Assembly: GCA_946965045.2 (NCBI GenBank)
Contig: OX337230.1
Coordinates: forward strand, 1,612,001 to 1,676,000
Length of the DNA stretch: 64,000 bases
Source of the DNA: Epithemia pelagica
Taxonomy: Eukaryota > Protista > Bacillariophyta
Reading direction: 5' to 3'
The position numbers and the translations under genes were made by a program. Below the pieces are notes generated by a model. The model had not been told where the DNA came from. It worked only from the letters and a program-made list of their open reading frames with translations, and searched no databases. How positions within the stretch are numbered: the first letter of the stretch is position 1; the number at the start of each line of letters is the position of its first letter. Of this stretch, positions 6,713 through 12,374 are shown piece by piece.

Positions 6713-6932
6713 TCCGCATCAGCTCTCTAGAAAGTGATGGTCTGATCTTCCTAAAGATCTTCGTTGTTTTGTCATTCAAGTTTTCAGCGACTGCGTTTTT
6801 TGTTCGCATTTTATTCGGGTTTGAAAATGCCGTTTTGAAAATTTGCGCAGGTTTGCCGAATGCCGATTCCGAATTGCGTGCATGTTCCATGGAGGTTCAA
6901 TGCTCTCGTCCACTTTTTCGAAACCATCGAAG

Positions 6933-8306
6933 ATGGAGAGCAACCCTGATTCAGAGTCGTCGTCGAGTGTTGAACCACTGTATATCACCGTCGGACCACC
7001 CGCTTGTGGAAAATCGTATTGGATAGCGGCTCATCGGTCCAGTGGGAAACCAGTTCGAGACATTTGCTTGGATGACCAACCTGATGTGTATATTCCTATC
7101 AAGAGTCAACACTTTTTGCGAAGTGATTCGTCGTCTGTCCCAAGACAGCAGTCCGATGACGATACCAAACGTTTGAAGGAGTCTTGGTTCGGACGCACCC
7201 TACGGCAGCGAATTATCGAGGATAATATTGAGTTAAATCTCATCGCGCAGCGATGTGCTGGTCAGTTGAGTAAGGACGAAATGCGAGATTCCTTGTCAAG
7301 TCACATTAAAAGAGGAAGCAACAACCATAATAGCCCTCTGCCGCCTCTGAGTGCCCGCCTTATTCGCTCGGCACTGGAGTGTTATGAGGCAGTGTTGGCC
7401 GAAAAGGGCGATAATCTTGCTCTCCCAGACACGACAGATCTTTTCATCGTAGAAGGCATCTTCAAAACGCATCCAGTGTCCAATCAAAGCGCTTTGGATG
7501 CCACCCATGCGACCTTGTCTTCCGTACCCTCTAATGAGCCAACGTCATGGGGCAACACCAACACCAAAGCTACGGACTACCGACAAGCTTTGCTTGCAGC
7601 CGCGAAACAAGGACGTCCGGTATACTTTGTGGTGTATAATGCTTTGGACGACCTCGATCGATCTCGTACAAACGGAAGGCAGTCAGAAACTCCAACGAGA
7701 ACCATGGAAACGGACTTAGAATCGATTGGTTTCGAGGGGCTGTTGAGACGGAACTTGACCCGCTACTTAGAGTCTGGTCGCTACGTTCCCATCCGCGTGA
7801 TTTGGGATATGCTTCATCGAACGAACTTGTTACTCAAAGACGTGCTACGGAATGCGCCTCCGTCTCATCGAGTGGAACGTTTGCAACGTGACCAAGCCCT
7901 GGTGGCCCTGTCTGGATTACAAATGATGGACAATCGTGCCATCCGGAAGCAGCAGCATTCTCCACGGCGCCCAGTCCAGAATCATGCTTCATCTCAAGGT
8001 TGCTCGCATTCACGTGCACGATATTCCAATCACGGTCGACATTCAAATAGTCAGCCGAATAGATGGAACCGAGGATCGGGACGTGGTTTTGGTGGAAACA
8101 GAAACAACCACCATCCGGGACAAATCCTTTCGGAAGGTCGGGAGACCTCTCGTTTCCATGAATCCGCGCCACGAAGGCCGCCAGGCAACTACCCTGGACG
8201 ATCCCACCAAGGCTTTCAGTCCTCCCATAAGAATGAGGTTTATAGGAGAGGACCAACAAAGGACACGAGTGGTGTTGAAGTGTCATCGAAACGATTTCGT
8301 TATTGA
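6933..8306 (+). CDS. P-loop kinase-like protein (AAA_33/polynucleotide-kinase-like) with R/G/N/S/H-rich C-terminal tail (457 aa)
   Basis: Walker A ITVGPPACGKSYW, WGNTNT (cf. DNTN of PNK-type kinases), LLRRNLTRYLESGRYVP lid-like segment. Divergent from the methyltransferase across 220 bp. Confidence 0.6.
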   Translation: MESNPDSESSSSVEPLYITVGPPACGKSYWIAAHRSSGKPVRDICLDDQPDVYIPIKSQHFLRSDSSSVPRQQSDDDTKRLKESWFGRTLRQRIIEDNIELNLIAQRCAGQLSKDEMRDSLSSHIKRGSNNHNSPLPPLSARLIRSALECYEAVLAEKGDNLALPDTTDLFIVEGIFKTHPVSNQSALDATHATLSSVPSNEPTSWGNTNTKATDYRQALLAAAKQGRPVYFVVYNALDDLDRSRTNGRQSETPTRTMETDLESIGFEGLLRRNLTRYLESGRYVPIRVIWDMLHRTNLLLKDVLRNAPPSHRVERLQRDQALVALSGLQMMDNRAIRKQQHSPRRPVQNHASSQGCSHSRARYSNHGRHSNSQPNRWNRGSGRGFGGNRNNHHPGQILSEGRETSRFHESAPRRPPGNYPGRSHQGFQSSHKNEVYRRGPTKDTSGVEVSSKRFRY

Positions 8307-8598: not shown

Positions 8599-8710
8599 TC
8601 CTAGGAGTAAGTCGACCGAGGAAACCAGTAGGAGTAATTCCTAGGAGTAGTCCCCAGCGCTACCTAGGAGCTAGGAGTAGCTTTTCATTTTTCAACCTCC
8701 TACTCCTAGC
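8599..8710. promoter_or_regulatory. Cluster of CTAGGAG(TAG) motifs upstream of the HSP90-N/DUF2009 gene
   Basis: CTAGGAG at 8601, 8641, 8664 and 8671, and inverted CTCCTAG at 8703. Regulatory role is inferred from position only. Confidence 0.35.
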
Positions 8711-8876
8711 AAATCCTTCCATTGTAATTTTTGAATTTGAATTCAAACATCTAGCCTGGAAACCCACGGATCATGGATGACGAGAAAGAGAGATCGGCAT
8801 GGGAAAACAACATTTGAGCATCATAATTTACCTCGGCTTGTTTGCTTGAAAACCTTTTCTCACGTTTCTCTTAGAA

Positions 8877-11626
8877 ATGAATGATGCAGCGGAAACGACC
8901 ACAGAAGCAAGTTCGGCCGAGAGCTCACCACTTCATCCCTCGGTAGGTCAGCCAGAATCAGGCGATCAACCACCAGTGTCATCCGATCCAGGAGATGCAA
9001 CCGGCCTTTTTCGGCACGATGTGAAGGATGCATCATACCCTCTTCCAGAACCCTTGTCACGGAGGCTTCGAAGAGGTGTACTATTGAGTGGTAATAGTGG
9101 GTCATCAAAGAAGGTTTTACGAGAGGGAATATCGGAAGCCCTGACCTTGCTGGTGGGAAACTCCATCCAAGCGATCGACCAAATGTACTTTGCCGCTCCT
9201 CCGCGTTTTCGGAAGCATCCAGCGTTTCAACATCGATTGTGTCTTCGTATACGCACGGATAAAGTGGCAAGAACTCTCTCACTGACCGACCTCGGAGCAG
9301 GGATGACTCGTGCGGACCTTATCAACTCACTTGGCATTGGTAGAGCGGGACTTGGAAGTAAGCCGTCGTCATCCTTGTCAAAACCAGGCGCTACACAAGG
9401 GTCAAACGGAGAAAATAATTCGGAAGATCCGTTGGACACAACAGATGAAGAGGAGTTTGAGTATTCGGATGCTCCAGATGACGAGGAGGAGTCCGAGGAA
9501 GAAGATGATGACGAAGATGGAGAAATGGAGGAAGACGCGGGCGAGGAAGAAGATGACGGCGAGAATGATCAAGTGGAAAGTGAAGAGAAAAGATCGGATA
9601 GTGAAGCGAGTGACGAGGTCATCGACTGTCGCTCGTCCGAGATTGGAGGTTTTTATGCCGCACTCTGTGGCTTAGGTGTCGGAATACGTGTGGGAACCAA
9701 GTCCAAATTTGACGACTATTATGAGTTTCAAGTTGGCATCATGCCTGACGATGATGAACGTAATCATGCCGACTCGGCTTTTGATTCGTTTCGTGTGAAA
9801 CGTCCCATGGATGAAGGCAGCAAACTCACAACAGAAAAGGGTTTTGACAAGTTTCATCATGTGCGCGGTGATTCAGGGACGTGTGTCACCATCAGACTGA
9901 ACGAAGATGCAATTGCCAATGGGCTTCTCGATGAAACCAATCTGAAAACCATCATTCTTAAGATTGTTGAAACAACTCAATATACAGTTGCATTTTCAAG
10001 TGACGAGCAAGCTGAAGAAATCATCCAAGCTTCTGCCAAGGAAGCTGAAGCAGTACGACAGTTTGAAAGTTCAGAGAACGATGTTGATGCTGTGGAAGGC
10101 GTTGCAAGTATAGAACTTGGAACAGCCGATGCGCGAGATGATGACACGTCGAGAGAGTACAATAGTGTCAGGGAGAGGGCCAAATTTATTCCATTGCGTC
10201 TCACTCTGCGTGAACGCAAGATCCTTCGTCTTGTGGAAGCGTCGATGCACTGCTGTGACTACACAAGTTCGGTTGACCGCCCTTTTCAGAGATCTGTCCG
10301 TAGAACTCATGAACAGCTCAAAGGGATAACTGCTGTCTTGCGAGGCCTCGTCACTGCTTGTGACTACAAGGCAGGACAAAAGCTCCTGTTGGACGATGAT
10401 TATGCTGAACACGAGCAGACTTTTCGACAAATGTTTGAAATCGCACGTCGTCACAAGATCATGAATCCGGAGAAAATGAGAACTGAATATGGAAAACTGA
10501 TATATCTGTTGCAAGATGCTGTTTCACCTTCACTGGCTCCTCATCTGGGCTTCTCTGTAAAGGGGCCGATTGAATCGGTCTACAAGTTCTTGGAGGAACG
10601 TGGAGGACTTGATCTGTTATCAGACAAATTTATTGAAACGGCTACTGCGGAAGTTGTGGCTGGTAAAAAGTCTCGAGCGGTAATCGACAAGGAAATTAGA
10701 ACGAAAGAACGTGCGGTTGCCATCCTCAAAAAGAAGTATGCTACCCGGAACCTGAGTCCTGACGATATTCACCAATGTCTCTATTCCATTGGTGACAACG
10801 ATTCCTTTTTGAACAGCAATCGCGTACCCATTGACAAAGTGATCGACTATCTCACAACTCATTTCTCCCCAAAGGAAATCGAGGATGGATACTCCCTGAG
10901 CATTGTTAGTGGAGAAGATGGTGCTCGCCTCTCTCACAGCCATGAACGCCAATATTACTTCGCGCTACAAAGCCTCACACTTTGGCGAGATATCATTGAC
11001 GACATGTTCCGATTGTGGGCTATGGCGGAAGATGATCTACTTAGCGAATCTGTCACGTACTCTCTTCAGGATACGGGACAGGGAATGCAGAGAGTCCAAC
11101 AATGTCCCAGAACCTACAAGGCGATGCAAACTATTCTGACACGAGTTCAAGGCAAGGTGAATCATTGGGTTGGGTCCAGTGTGATACACATGGGAGACCA
11201 CAATGTACCGAACGCTCTGAGCTTCATTGACAAGTACACACAAGGTAGGCATGCTGATTCGTCTTTGTTTGAGATTCTTCAAAGCTGCGACTGACGTTTT
11301 ACTTCTGCATTGCAGTCCCTAGAATTCTGGGTCCAATTGTGAGTTGTCTGGAGAGTCTAGAGAAAATATGCGAGAAAGACGACGGTGTCCGGAAAATGGT
11401 TGACAGTGGATTTGGTGGAGTGGAGAAAGTGCGTCAAGATATTCTCTATGATTTCTTCAAATCAGCATTCGACGGATCAGGCGCAGACAACTTTTACGAT
11501 GCGGGTAGTTGTATAGATGGCCGAATGACTAGTGCTTGGAATTGGTGTTCTCAGCTACAAGAGAAACCATTCTATCCAATCTTCAAGCTCACTGGATTCG
11601 TTGGATTTGATGGAGAATTCAAATAG
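8877..11626 (+). CDS. Fusion of a degenerate HSP90-type GHKL N-domain and DUF2009 (UPF0652); 2 exons: 8877-11244, 11316-11626
   Basis: HSP90-like LVGNSIQAIDQ, RTLSLTDLGAGMTRADLINSLG, GGFYAA, GTCVTIRLNED. DUF2009 motifs AKFIPLRLTLRERKILRLVE, HSHERQY, DTGQGMQRVQ, WVGSSVIHMGDHNVPNALSFIDKYTQ|VPRIL. A 71-nt GT-AG intron restores the frame. Confidence 0.8.
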
Positions 11627-11654
11627 AGGAAAGCAGTCACCAAATCAGGTCTAT

Positions 11655-12374
11655 TTAGATTGCTCCAAGCAAATCTTTCTGTAGAACGATTGTTTTCCCT
11701 GGTGTTTCTAGTGGATGCCAATGTTCCGAGTAGCCCAGTTTGGCATACATTCGGGAGGCTATGTCGTTGGTACGTTCCACTCGAACGAAGGCCTCTCGTT
11801 GTTCCAGTTCCAAGCAAAACTCTTCGCACCGCTGAATAAGCATTTGCGCAATCCCTAATCTGCGATAACCTGGTGCGACGCACAGGTCAGACAGGTAAGG
11901 TCTTGGATTGTAGACATACGACGTGGGCCGATTTGGCTTTCTGGCATCAATATCACAAAAGCCAACCACTTCGGTCTTTGGTTGGTCCTTGCATTCATCC
12001 AGTGTTGTTGCTAGGGCCACAAACATGCGATGTCGAGCACGTTCGTAAGGAAAATTTTGCTGCAGTCGATTCAGCTCACCCAGCCTATAAAGTGGCTTGG
12101 CAGGACCAACTGCAGTCTCGTAAAAGCAACTCATGATCAAGTCAGCGACTGAGCCCATTTCACCATAGTTTGGATCTCGTATTCGTATTTTTGGAGAAGA
12201 TGTTTGCTCATTGTTCGAAGATGACGATGACGAGGTCAACGAATCCTGCATGAAAATCGTGCTTGTTGATCTTGTTGTTCTCCAGGAGACCTTTGGAGGT
12301 TGCGGCGACCATGCTGCTGTGAAAACAGCTGCTGCAAAAATACAAGCCAGCGCAATCAATCGACTCATCCACAT
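11655..12374 (-). CDS. GNAT-family acetyltransferase, probably plastid-targeted (239 aa)
   Basis: Signal peptide ending TAA-WSP (ASAFAP-like) followed by an S/T-rich transit-like segment. GNAT motif A YLSDLCVAPGYRRLGIAQML, motif B N..A..MY.KLGY. Confidence 0.8.
   Translation of the reverse strand: MWMSRLIALACIFAAAVFTAAWSPQPPKVSWRTTRSTSTIFMQDSLTSSSSSSNNEQTSSPKIRIRDPNYGEMGSVADLIMSCFYETAVGPAKPLYRLGELNRLQQNFPYERARHRMFVALATTLDECKDQPKTEVVGFCDIDARKPNRPTSYVYNPRPYLSDLCVAPGYRRLGIAQMLIQRCEEFCLELEQREAFVRVERTNDIASRMYAKLGYSEHWHPLETPGKTIVLQKDLLGAI

Follow-up and report, generated by a model that had tools for sequence, protein, structure and literature searches.

An HSP90-type N-terminal domain, probably non-hydrolysing, on a DUF2009 protein of diatoms and Parmales

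Introduction

Why would a diatom protein of the DUF2009 family begin with what looks like the ATP-binding domain of HSP90, and what could such a domain be doing there? The question is raised by a gene at positions 8877-11626 (plus strand) of a 64,000-nucleotide stretch of the Epithemia pelagica genome (GenBank assembly GCA_946965045.2, contig OX337230.1, positions 1,612,001 to 1,676,000 of the forward strand), which we refer to as the window and whose numbering is used throughout. The HSP90 N-domain is among the best-studied ATP-binding and drug-binding modules and is rarely found outside HSP90 itself. A preliminary description of the window, made from its letters and open reading frames, had read the gene as a relic of this domain fused to an uncharacterized DUF2009 domain, and had proposed that the product is a pseudo-ATPase chaperone module.

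Here we combine sequence, profile and fold searches with transcript data and a survey of homologs. The reading that we favor, with a probability of about 0.7, is that the gene encodes an expressed two-domain protein in which a non-hydrolysing, HSP90-derived domain serves as the adaptor or regulatory head of a DUF2009 ubiquitin-pathway enzyme. Both domains are known and this is not a new kind of system, but their combination is previously undescribed in the literature that we found: nothing was retrieved on a fusion of the HSP90 N-terminal domain with DUF2009, and DUF2009 was mentioned only by a 2025 Plasmodium study (PMC12007708) and its preprint. Public databases already contain the architecture, its proteins being labeled “hypothetical protein” or named automatically.

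Results

The N-Terminal Domain Belongs With HSP90

A phmmer search of residues 1-433 against PDB chains returned 143 distinct sequences at E ≤ 10 (best E 4.6e-7), and the best 60 of these 143 are all HSP90-family N-domains. We then based a family profile on an alignment of 31 homologous N-domains (alignment A1, species-level sequences), in which 33 columns are invariant across all 31 sequences. Against the PDB this profile reached E 5.4e-16, with its best 60 matches again all from the HSP90 family and of the type found in the eukaryotic cytosol and endoplasmic reticulum (ER). The profile alignment comprises three collinear segments that together cover the whole HSP90 N-terminal domain. The first runs from the RELISN helix to the DxGxGMT loop; the second holds the GFYSA helix and the next strand; the third takes in the RGT strand plus the final helix and strand. 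Pfam, by comparison, gave only a sub-threshold match to HATPase_c_3 (E 0.14) in the N-terminal part. Pfam alone would therefore miss this domain, and searches by PDB sequence, by profile and by fold were needed.

An AlphaFold2 model computed from A1 has a confident core (predicted local distance difference test, pLDDT, above 90) and a predicted template modeling score (pTM) of 0.67. The top 50 Foldseek matches of this model in the PDB are all HSP90 N-terminal domains (E 7e-12, template modeling scores of 0.71-0.76 normalized by target). A second structural search that is independent of Foldseek, run with VIA-align over 48,161 PDB representatives, gave the following Z-scores:

HSP90α N-terminal domain: Z 18.0 (195 of 208 residues aligned, 25% identity)
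HtpG: Z 17.0
TRAP1: Z 16.8
GRP94: Z 16.4
MORC2: Z 12.1
SMCHD1: Z 11.5
Topoisomerase II: Z 11.1
MutL: Z 9.2
Sacsin SR1 (5v44): Z 8.8
Histidine kinases: Z about 5

By descending Z, the GHKL matches run from HSP90 through MORC, SMCHD1, topoisomerase II, GyrB and MutL to the histidine kinases. Within the HSP90 family (HSP90, GRP94, TRAP1, HtpG), Z lies between 16 and 18, with up to 203 residues aligned at 17-27% identity, and a model of the full-length natural homolog P0003 reproduced the HSP90 match of the first model at Z 17.7. Shared elements include the HSP90-specific N-terminal strand and helix, the RELISN-type helix with its magnesium-binding Asn, the DxGxGMT loop, the GFY(S/A)A helix and the (R/S)GT strand. 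Judged by sequence and predicted structure, the N-terminal domain is an HSP90-type Bergerat-fold domain descended from an HSP90 N-domain. The assignment of the N-terminal third to the HSP90 GHKL domain, first made by eye, is thereby borne out by the sequence, profile and fold searches, and the Bergerat fold, for which a check by AlphaFold and Foldseek had been proposed, is adopted as far as prediction tells. Sacsin, MORC, MutL and GyrB were considered as closer relatives and are ruled out by the Z-scores together with the best sequence matches, all of which are HSP90s. As for the donor paralog, the sequence matches favor the eukaryotic cytosolic and ER forms; the structural Z-scores of HSP90α, HtpG, TRAP1 and GRP94 fall within 2 units of one another and do not single one out.

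A further motif, (A/S)-(T/S)-Y-P-L-P-x-P-L-x-x-R-L, precedes the GHKL core at 9030-9075 (residues ~52-66) and occurs from Parmales to pennate diatoms, with Y54 and L60 nearly invariant. The model shows this motif as the N-terminal strand and first helix, which in HSP90 are the element swapped between protomers.

The Adenine Pocket Is Kept and the Hydrolytic Machinery Is Degenerate

The features of the N-terminal part, all on the plus strand, are as follows:

8877..9023, plus: disordered N-terminal extension, residues 1-49, rich in Ser, Pro and Thr
9024..10010, plus: HSP90-type GHKL (Bergerat-fold) domain, residues ~50-378, internal disordered insert included
9144..9161, plus: motif I, TLLVGN, residues 90-95, counterpart of HSP90 RELISN
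9147-9149, plus: codon of L91, at the catalytic Glu position
9159-9161, plus: codon of N95, the retained magnesium-ligand Asn
9285..9308, plus: motif II, TDLGAGMT, residues 137-144, the DxGxG adenine-binding loop (D138, G140, G142, M143, T144)
9336..9644, plus: acidic disordered segment, residues 154-256, in place of the HSP90 ATP lid
9642..9662, plus: degenerate G2 box, IGGFYAA, counterpart of HSP90 GQFGVGFYSA in the profile alignment
9873..9887, plus: SGTCV strand, counterpart of HSP90 RGTKV, in the third collinear alignment segment

The extension has pLDDT below 50 over most of residues 1-45 and is unconserved in A1. In the domain itself, the profile alignment maps the HSP90 catalytic Glu to L91, the magnesium-binding Asn to N95 and the adenine-binding Asp to D138, in line with the original observation that TLLVGN has replaced the catalytic Glu of RELISN (yeast E33, human E47) while the Asn and the DxGxGM sequence (TDLGAGM) are kept.

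Conservation was counted over ~100 family members aligned to the profile, from which true HSP90s had been removed. N95 is invariant across these ~100 relatives, and the nearly invariant positions, with their human HSP90α equivalents, are N95 (N51), A99 (A55), D101 (D57), D138 (D93) and T335 (T184), to which G140, G142, M143, T144, N150, L152, F259, Y260 and V337 are added. Motif II is invariant in A1 and at least 99% conserved in the ~125-150 sequences that cover it, a few of them true HSP90s, and 110 of 111 relatives have the adenine-pocket Thr, T335. The position equivalent to human N106, near the pocket, varies freely. The nearly invariant set is essentially the adenine pocket, and some adenine-type ligand may still bind there.

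The catalytic Glu position is a different matter: among the ~100 relatives it holds Q (33), H (20), E (~12), N (9), S (6), L (4), F (4), Y (3) and others. Of the three glycines in the GxxGxG phosphate loop, the last one alone remains. Family members have I, L or V where the human protein has G135; conservation holds at G257, G258, F259 and Y260. Nothing follows of the remainder of HSP90, as had also been noted at first: Pfam detected no middle or C-terminal domain (PF00183) in the E. pelagica protein or in homologs P0003 and P0048, and the true HSP90s recovered by the same profile search do carry PF00183. Conventional GHKL hydrolysis appears very unlikely because the lid, a conserved catalytic base and the middle-domain Arg are all missing and the phosphate loop is degenerate. 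The label “pseudo-ATPase” fits what the sequences suggest. The word “relic”, on the other hand, is misleading, since the alignments indicate that purifying selection has acted on the domain from the last ancestor that diatoms share with Parmales onward, with a nearly invariant adenine pocket.

A Disordered Acidic Loop Takes the Place of the Lid

The ATP lid of HSP90 is ~29 residues long. At the corresponding location, between the helix after DxGxG and the GGFY motif, the E. pelagica protein has 103 residues (154-256) of which 42% are Asp or Glu, rising to 45% over residues 161-256. The acidic insert placed at about 9410-9620 in the preliminary description is the core of this segment. Low pLDDT (below 50 over most of residues 165-243) predicts that it is disordered. 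The equivalent segment in 91 relatives ranges from 11 to 180 residues (median 94) with an acidic fraction of 0-48%, and the shortest members, with 11-27 residues, include Parmales proteins. The simplest history consistent with these lengths is that the lid was lost first and that a disordered acidic loop then expanded, mainly in diatoms.

Acid-rich, low-complexity insertions were also seen in other N-domain loops, at residues ~120-175 of Tetraparma P0048 and residues ~36-55 of P0045. The occurrence of acidic insertions in three different surface loops, depending on lineage, suggests either selection for an acidic, disordered appendage or mere tolerance of one.

The Second Domain Is a Full DUF2009 Domain With an Intact Cysteine Signature

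The products of the two exons were searched separately. Pfam matched PF09418 (cut-off 25) to residues 434-789 at E 9.9e-144 (480 bits, profile positions 1-356) and to the exon 2 product at E 4.1e-41 (142 bits, profile positions 366-455), and homologs P0003 and P0048 also carry a full-length match. The E. pelagica domain shares 55-83% identity with DUF2009 domains from across the eukaryotes, and identity among diatoms, fungi and Amoebozoa is 55-60%, a remarkable degree of conservation. By sequence, the diatom protein is not an HSP90 but a full member of PF09418.

DUF2009 can no longer be called uncharacterized, as it was in the preliminary description. The Plasmodium DUF2009 protein PF3D7_0811400 was captured by a ubiquitin activity probe and called a non-canonical E2, with a signature FDGSGX7GSCIDGRLTS defined around C572; with the substitution C572R, the protein was no longer labeled by the Ub-Dha probe, and its ATP-dependent loading with ubiquitin was lost (PMC12007708). 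Pfam has since named the family as a non-canonical E2. In the E. pelagica protein the signature lies intact in exon 2 (FDGSG-ADNFYDA-GSCIDGRMTS), and it is present in all complete homologs. By analogy with the Plasmodium protein, the diatom DUF2009 domain is likely an E2-like enzyme whose catalytic Cys would be residue 855 in the spliced model. It does not resemble a canonical E2 (UBC fold, HPN motif), as there is no UQ_con match in Pfam and no UBC fold in the model; nor was a solved relative of DUF2009 found in the PDB by sequence.

For a view of the whole protein we used the full-length model of P0003, which has a pTM of 0.73 despite ~140 disordered residues. This value is a weak hint that the N-domain and DUF2009 might be packed in a fixed arrangement.

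One Spliced Transcript Spans Both Domains

A single uninterrupted open reading frame (ORF) of 805 codons extends over 8877-11294 (plus strand), and the spliced model comprises 892 amino acids in two exons, with a TAG stop codon at 11624-11626:

8877..11244, plus: exon 1, residues 1-789 and one base of a split Val codon, starting at the first ATG of the ORF
11245..11315, plus: intron of 71 nt that keeps the frame, GT at 11245-11246 and AG at 11314-11315
11316..11626, plus: exon 2, the last ~100 DUF2009 residues and the TAG stop, placed by a frame check and by PF09418 positions 366-455
10011..10175, plus: linker, a long helix (residues 379-402) and then a disordered acidic stretch to residue 433, from secondary structure and pLDDT
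10176..11244, plus: DUF2009 (PF09418), first 356 profile positions, residues 434-789, by Pfam
11510..11512, plus: proposed catalytic Cys codon, TGT

The gene is transcribed and spliced, with one contig running across both domains. In data set X5, from the same organism, a 3,567-nt contig covers 8764-11242 and resumes at 11314-11800, skipping exactly the 71-nt GT..AG intron. The kind of this data set was not recorded, and we read it as RNA because the contig lacks the intron and intergenic positions 8663-8763 are uncovered. A 219-nt contig from a 2016 marine metatranscriptome (X1) crosses the same junction with zero mismatches. Complete fused ORFs also occur in transcript assemblies of other diatoms, namely P0003 (896 amino acids, MMETSP) and P0304 of Aulacoseira subarctica (859 amino acids, MMETSP1064). 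The intron position, just after KYTQ, appears to be common to many diatom homologs, and more than 25 intron-blind gene calls read through after ...FIDKYTQG; these include P0002, P0011, P0013, P0017, P0020, P0023, P0025, P0032, P0034-P0036, P0038 and others.

The preliminary description had held that DUF2009 lies in the same exon as the N-domain and that the gene is not a merged model. DUF2009 does begin in exon 1, but its last ~100 residues, with the proposed Cys, are in exon 2. The shared exon, the spliced contig and the full-length transcripts of other diatoms all speak against a merged model, and the X5 contig and the MMETSP ORFs contradict the alternative that transcripts start downstream and encode DUF2009 only.

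Single-base differences were found among the runs from this organism (T>C at 8944, G>A at 10883 and A>G at 10952). Residue 23 of the database protein P0001 differs (Val versus Ala) in a way consistent with the change at 8944. These differences are probably allelic or strain variants.

The Fusion Is Found in Diatoms and Parmales

A word-based search with the N-domain returned 49 proteins, 48 of which carry PF09418 according to precomputed annotation (the exception is P0043), and more than 40 diatom and Parmales proteins have the same architecture. An exhaustive profile search over 1.84 billion representatives yielded 62 clusters at E < 1e-30 and 122 at E < 1e-10. The first true HSP90s come at E ~1e-11, and their alignment is confined to profile positions ~58-136. 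That search found no stand-alone N-domain and no intermediate toward HSP90, and the family matches that were examined are either full fusions or exon-sized gene-call fragments that end in intron read-through. All diatoms sampled and their sister group Parmales share the layout; named members include the pennates Amphora, Fistulifera and Mayamaea, the radial centric Aulacoseira, and, in Parmales, Tetraparma and two Triparma species.

The N-domain is absent from the DUF2009 proteins of Ectocarpus, Fibrocapsa, Tribonema, Chrysoparadoxa, Ochromonas, fungi and Balamuthia. A survey of the architecture, as had been suggested at the outset, thus finds the fusion in diatoms and Parmales and no N-domain in the other stramenopiles checked. 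In Ectocarpus, Fibrocapsa and Balamuthia (Pfam scan) and in fungi (precomputed Pfam annotation), the space ahead of DUF2009 is taken by a zinc finger, an ANCHR-like B-box; the proteins of Tribonema, Chrysoparadoxa and Ochromonas have PF09418 alone. In a DUF2009 tree, the 23 bearers of the N-domain form one clade (Shimodaira-Hasegawa-like approximate likelihood ratio test, SH-aLRT, 100) in which Parmales are sister to diatoms. Next to this clade stand brown algae together with Tribonema and Chrysoparadoxa, joined to it by a branch with SH-aLRT 84; the Ectocarpus member of that group has the B-box. The simplest history suggested by these sequences is a single origin of the fusion, in which a copy of an HSP90 N-domain replaced the B-box in the ancestor shared by diatoms and Parmales.

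Discussion

Comparison With Known Systems

Relative to HSP90, the diatom protein lacks the middle and C-terminal domains and the MEEVD tail, does not conserve the catalytic Glu, has its lid deleted or exchanged for a disordered acidic loop, retains one of the three G2-box glycines, and joins the N-domain to an unrelated enzyme domain. It shares with Plasmodium PF3D7_0811400 a full-length PF09418 match, the signature FDGSG-x7-GSCIDGR(L/M)TS and the presence of a variable module ahead of the conserved DUF2009. That module, however, consists of five short helices in Plasmodium, which are required for binding the RING protein Rbx1 and dispensable for probe labeling (PMC12007708), versus a derivative of the HSP90 N-terminal domain in diatoms. 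The DUF2009 proteins of brown algae, raphidophytes, fungi and Amoebozoa differ from both in that their N-terminal module is the ANCHR-like B-box.

Among proteostasis proteins that have put an HSP90-like domain to new use, the closest precedent is sacsin, whose SRR contains an HSP90-like GHKL domain in a protein with ubiquitin-system and chaperone modules. The sacsin domain is a far weaker structural match (Z 8.8, against 18.0 for HSP90) and has other partner domains, and the Pfam SACS domain gave no match at E ≤ 1 in the E. pelagica protein. The HSP90-like domain of sacsin has been reported to hydrolyse ATP. MORC and SMCHD1 share the GHKL fold and some HSP90-like features (Z 11.5-12.1), but are more distant than HSP90 and are active dimerizing ATPases with other accessory domains. 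With CHIP/STUB1 there is a functional analogy only: parts of the chaperone system and ubiquitin transfer are united in one polypeptide. CHIP/STUB1 binds the tails of HSP70 and HSP90 through TPR repeats and is a U-box E3; it has no chaperone-derived domain and no homology to the diatom protein.

A Possible Role for the N-Domain and Its Alternatives

We suggest that the N-domain, without hydrolysing ATP, could act as a partner-recruiting or regulatory head of the DUF2009 enzyme. It may position or gate the Cys855 site, possibly upon binding of an adenine nucleotide or a similar ligand to the conserved pocket, and would need no ATPase cycle to do so. Across DUF2009 proteins, the N-terminal slot could be viewed as an adaptor position, occupied by the B-box in most lineages checked and by Rbx1-binding helices in Plasmodium. 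Because the N-domain replaced the B-box, an adaptor or regulatory role seems likelier than the chaperone module first proposed. The broader expectation of a role in proteostasis is independently backed through ubiquitin conjugation, whereas chaperone activity is nowhere indicated.

Several points weigh against this proposal. The AlphaFold models were built from the same alignments as the profile, which makes the evidence from fold and sequence partly dependent. About 12% of the relatives keep Glu at the catalytic position, and weak hydrolysis is possible in some of them; the pocket residues could also be conserved for folding alone. The E2 assignment of DUF2009 comes from a single Plasmodium protein examined in a single study. 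In the P0003 model, the DUF2009 part, searched within the large full-length structure, had no PDB match above Z 6. Finally, the RNA evidence consists of assembled contigs, X5 is unlabeled as RNA, and additional shorter isoforms may exist.

Among the alternatives, the N-domain could be a pure structural scaffold that binds neither nucleotide nor small ligand, its pocket residues serving folding or a protein-protein surface. With lid and phosphate loop lost, most of the contacts to a triphosphate are gone, and the B-box that the domain replaced is itself a protein-interaction module. The invariant residues, however, are those that line the adenine site of HSP90 (N95, A99, D138, G140, G142, M143, L152, F259 and T335), while the nearby N106 equivalent varies freely, a pattern hard to explain by folding alone; we consider this scaffold unlikely, if still a serious candidate. 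The opposite case, in which another residue or a partner supplies the catalytic base and an ATP-driven clamp or chaperone cycle feeds clients to DUF2009, could appeal to a fold nearest to the true HSP90s, to the invariance or near invariance of the magnesium-ligand Asn, the DxGxG loop and the pocket Thr, and to the presence of Gln, His or Glu at the catalytic position in most relatives. Yet that position is unconstrained (Q/H/E/N/S/L/F/Y and others, with Leu in E. pelagica), the ATP-covering lid is absent or swapped for a disordered loop of 11-180 residues, two of the three G2-box glycines are lost, and there is neither a middle domain to provide the catalytic Arg nor a dimerization domain. 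An active ATPase is accordingly hard to credit on these sequences, and we regard it as decidedly improbable.

Other doubts concern the second domain and the gene itself. DUF2009 might be an enzyme other than an E2, for whose chemistry the GHKL-derived domain supplies or senses nucleotide. In favor of this are the single study behind the E2 claim, a DUF2009 model that lacks a UBC fold and for which no relative was found among solved structures, and a weak likeness to adenylosuccinate lyase noted by the Plasmodium study (PMC12007708). It is difficult to reconcile with the effects of C572R on probe labeling and ubiquitin loading (PMC12007708) and with a Cys signature that is perfectly conserved in the E. 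pelagica protein. Moreover, most eukaryotes checked have a B-box and not a nucleotide-binding domain, and nucleotide delivery is therefore no general requirement; this alternative strikes us as improbable. That the gene model is an artefact, with two genes read as one or an N-terminal part that is a leader or pseudogenic, draws on nothing beyond the general risk of reading eukaryotic DNA without transcript data. Against it stand the two domains in one uninterrupted 805-codon ORF, a single spliced contig across 8764-11800, more than 40 diatom and Parmales proteins of the same architecture with complete transcript ORFs among them, and the 33 invariant N-domain columns across 31 species-level sequences, and we give it almost no weight.

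A more speculative extension of the favored adaptor or regulatory role, which we think rather unlikely, would make the lidless head a working switch, gated by ligand or partner, on a novel class of ubiquitin-conjugating enzyme. Its pocket might sense nucleotide as a signal of energy or stress, or might dock proteins that bind the HSP90 N-domain, such as Sgt1, and the acidic loop might, like the tail of Cdc34, engage a cullin-RING ligase. Sgt1 is an SCF-linked co-chaperone that normally binds the HSP90 N-domain. If such a switch existed, diatoms would have wired parts of the chaperone system directly into ubiquitin transfer.

Implications

The diatom domain offers a natural “minimal” HSP90 N-domain, from which it may be seen what the fold does without lid, catalytic Glu and middle domain. 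For DUF2009, whose sole functional data come from one Plasmodium study, the family provides independent comparative support and a handle, and the N-terminal position could represent a swappable adaptor slot that takes a B-box, helices or an HSP90 N-terminal domain. The fusion also appears to be a clean synapomorphy for the clade of diatoms and Parmales.

Neighboring Genes

Upstream, an ORF of 487 amino acids at 6843-8306 (plus strand) contains a P-loop (GPPACGKS), a match to AAA_33 just under threshold (E 1.4e-5) and a tail rich in Arg, Gly and Asn. It is taken as a separate gene because the X5 contigs leave 8663-8763 uncovered. Downstream, a GNAT acetyltransferase gene (Acetyltransf_1, E 1.7e-12) lies at 11655-12374 on the minus strand and is convergent with the fusion gene. 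Only 28 nt separate the two stop codons, and the 3′ untranslated regions of the two genes must therefore overlap. The X5 contig extends ~600 nt past 11800 into this neighbor, as assembled overlapping convergent transcripts would.

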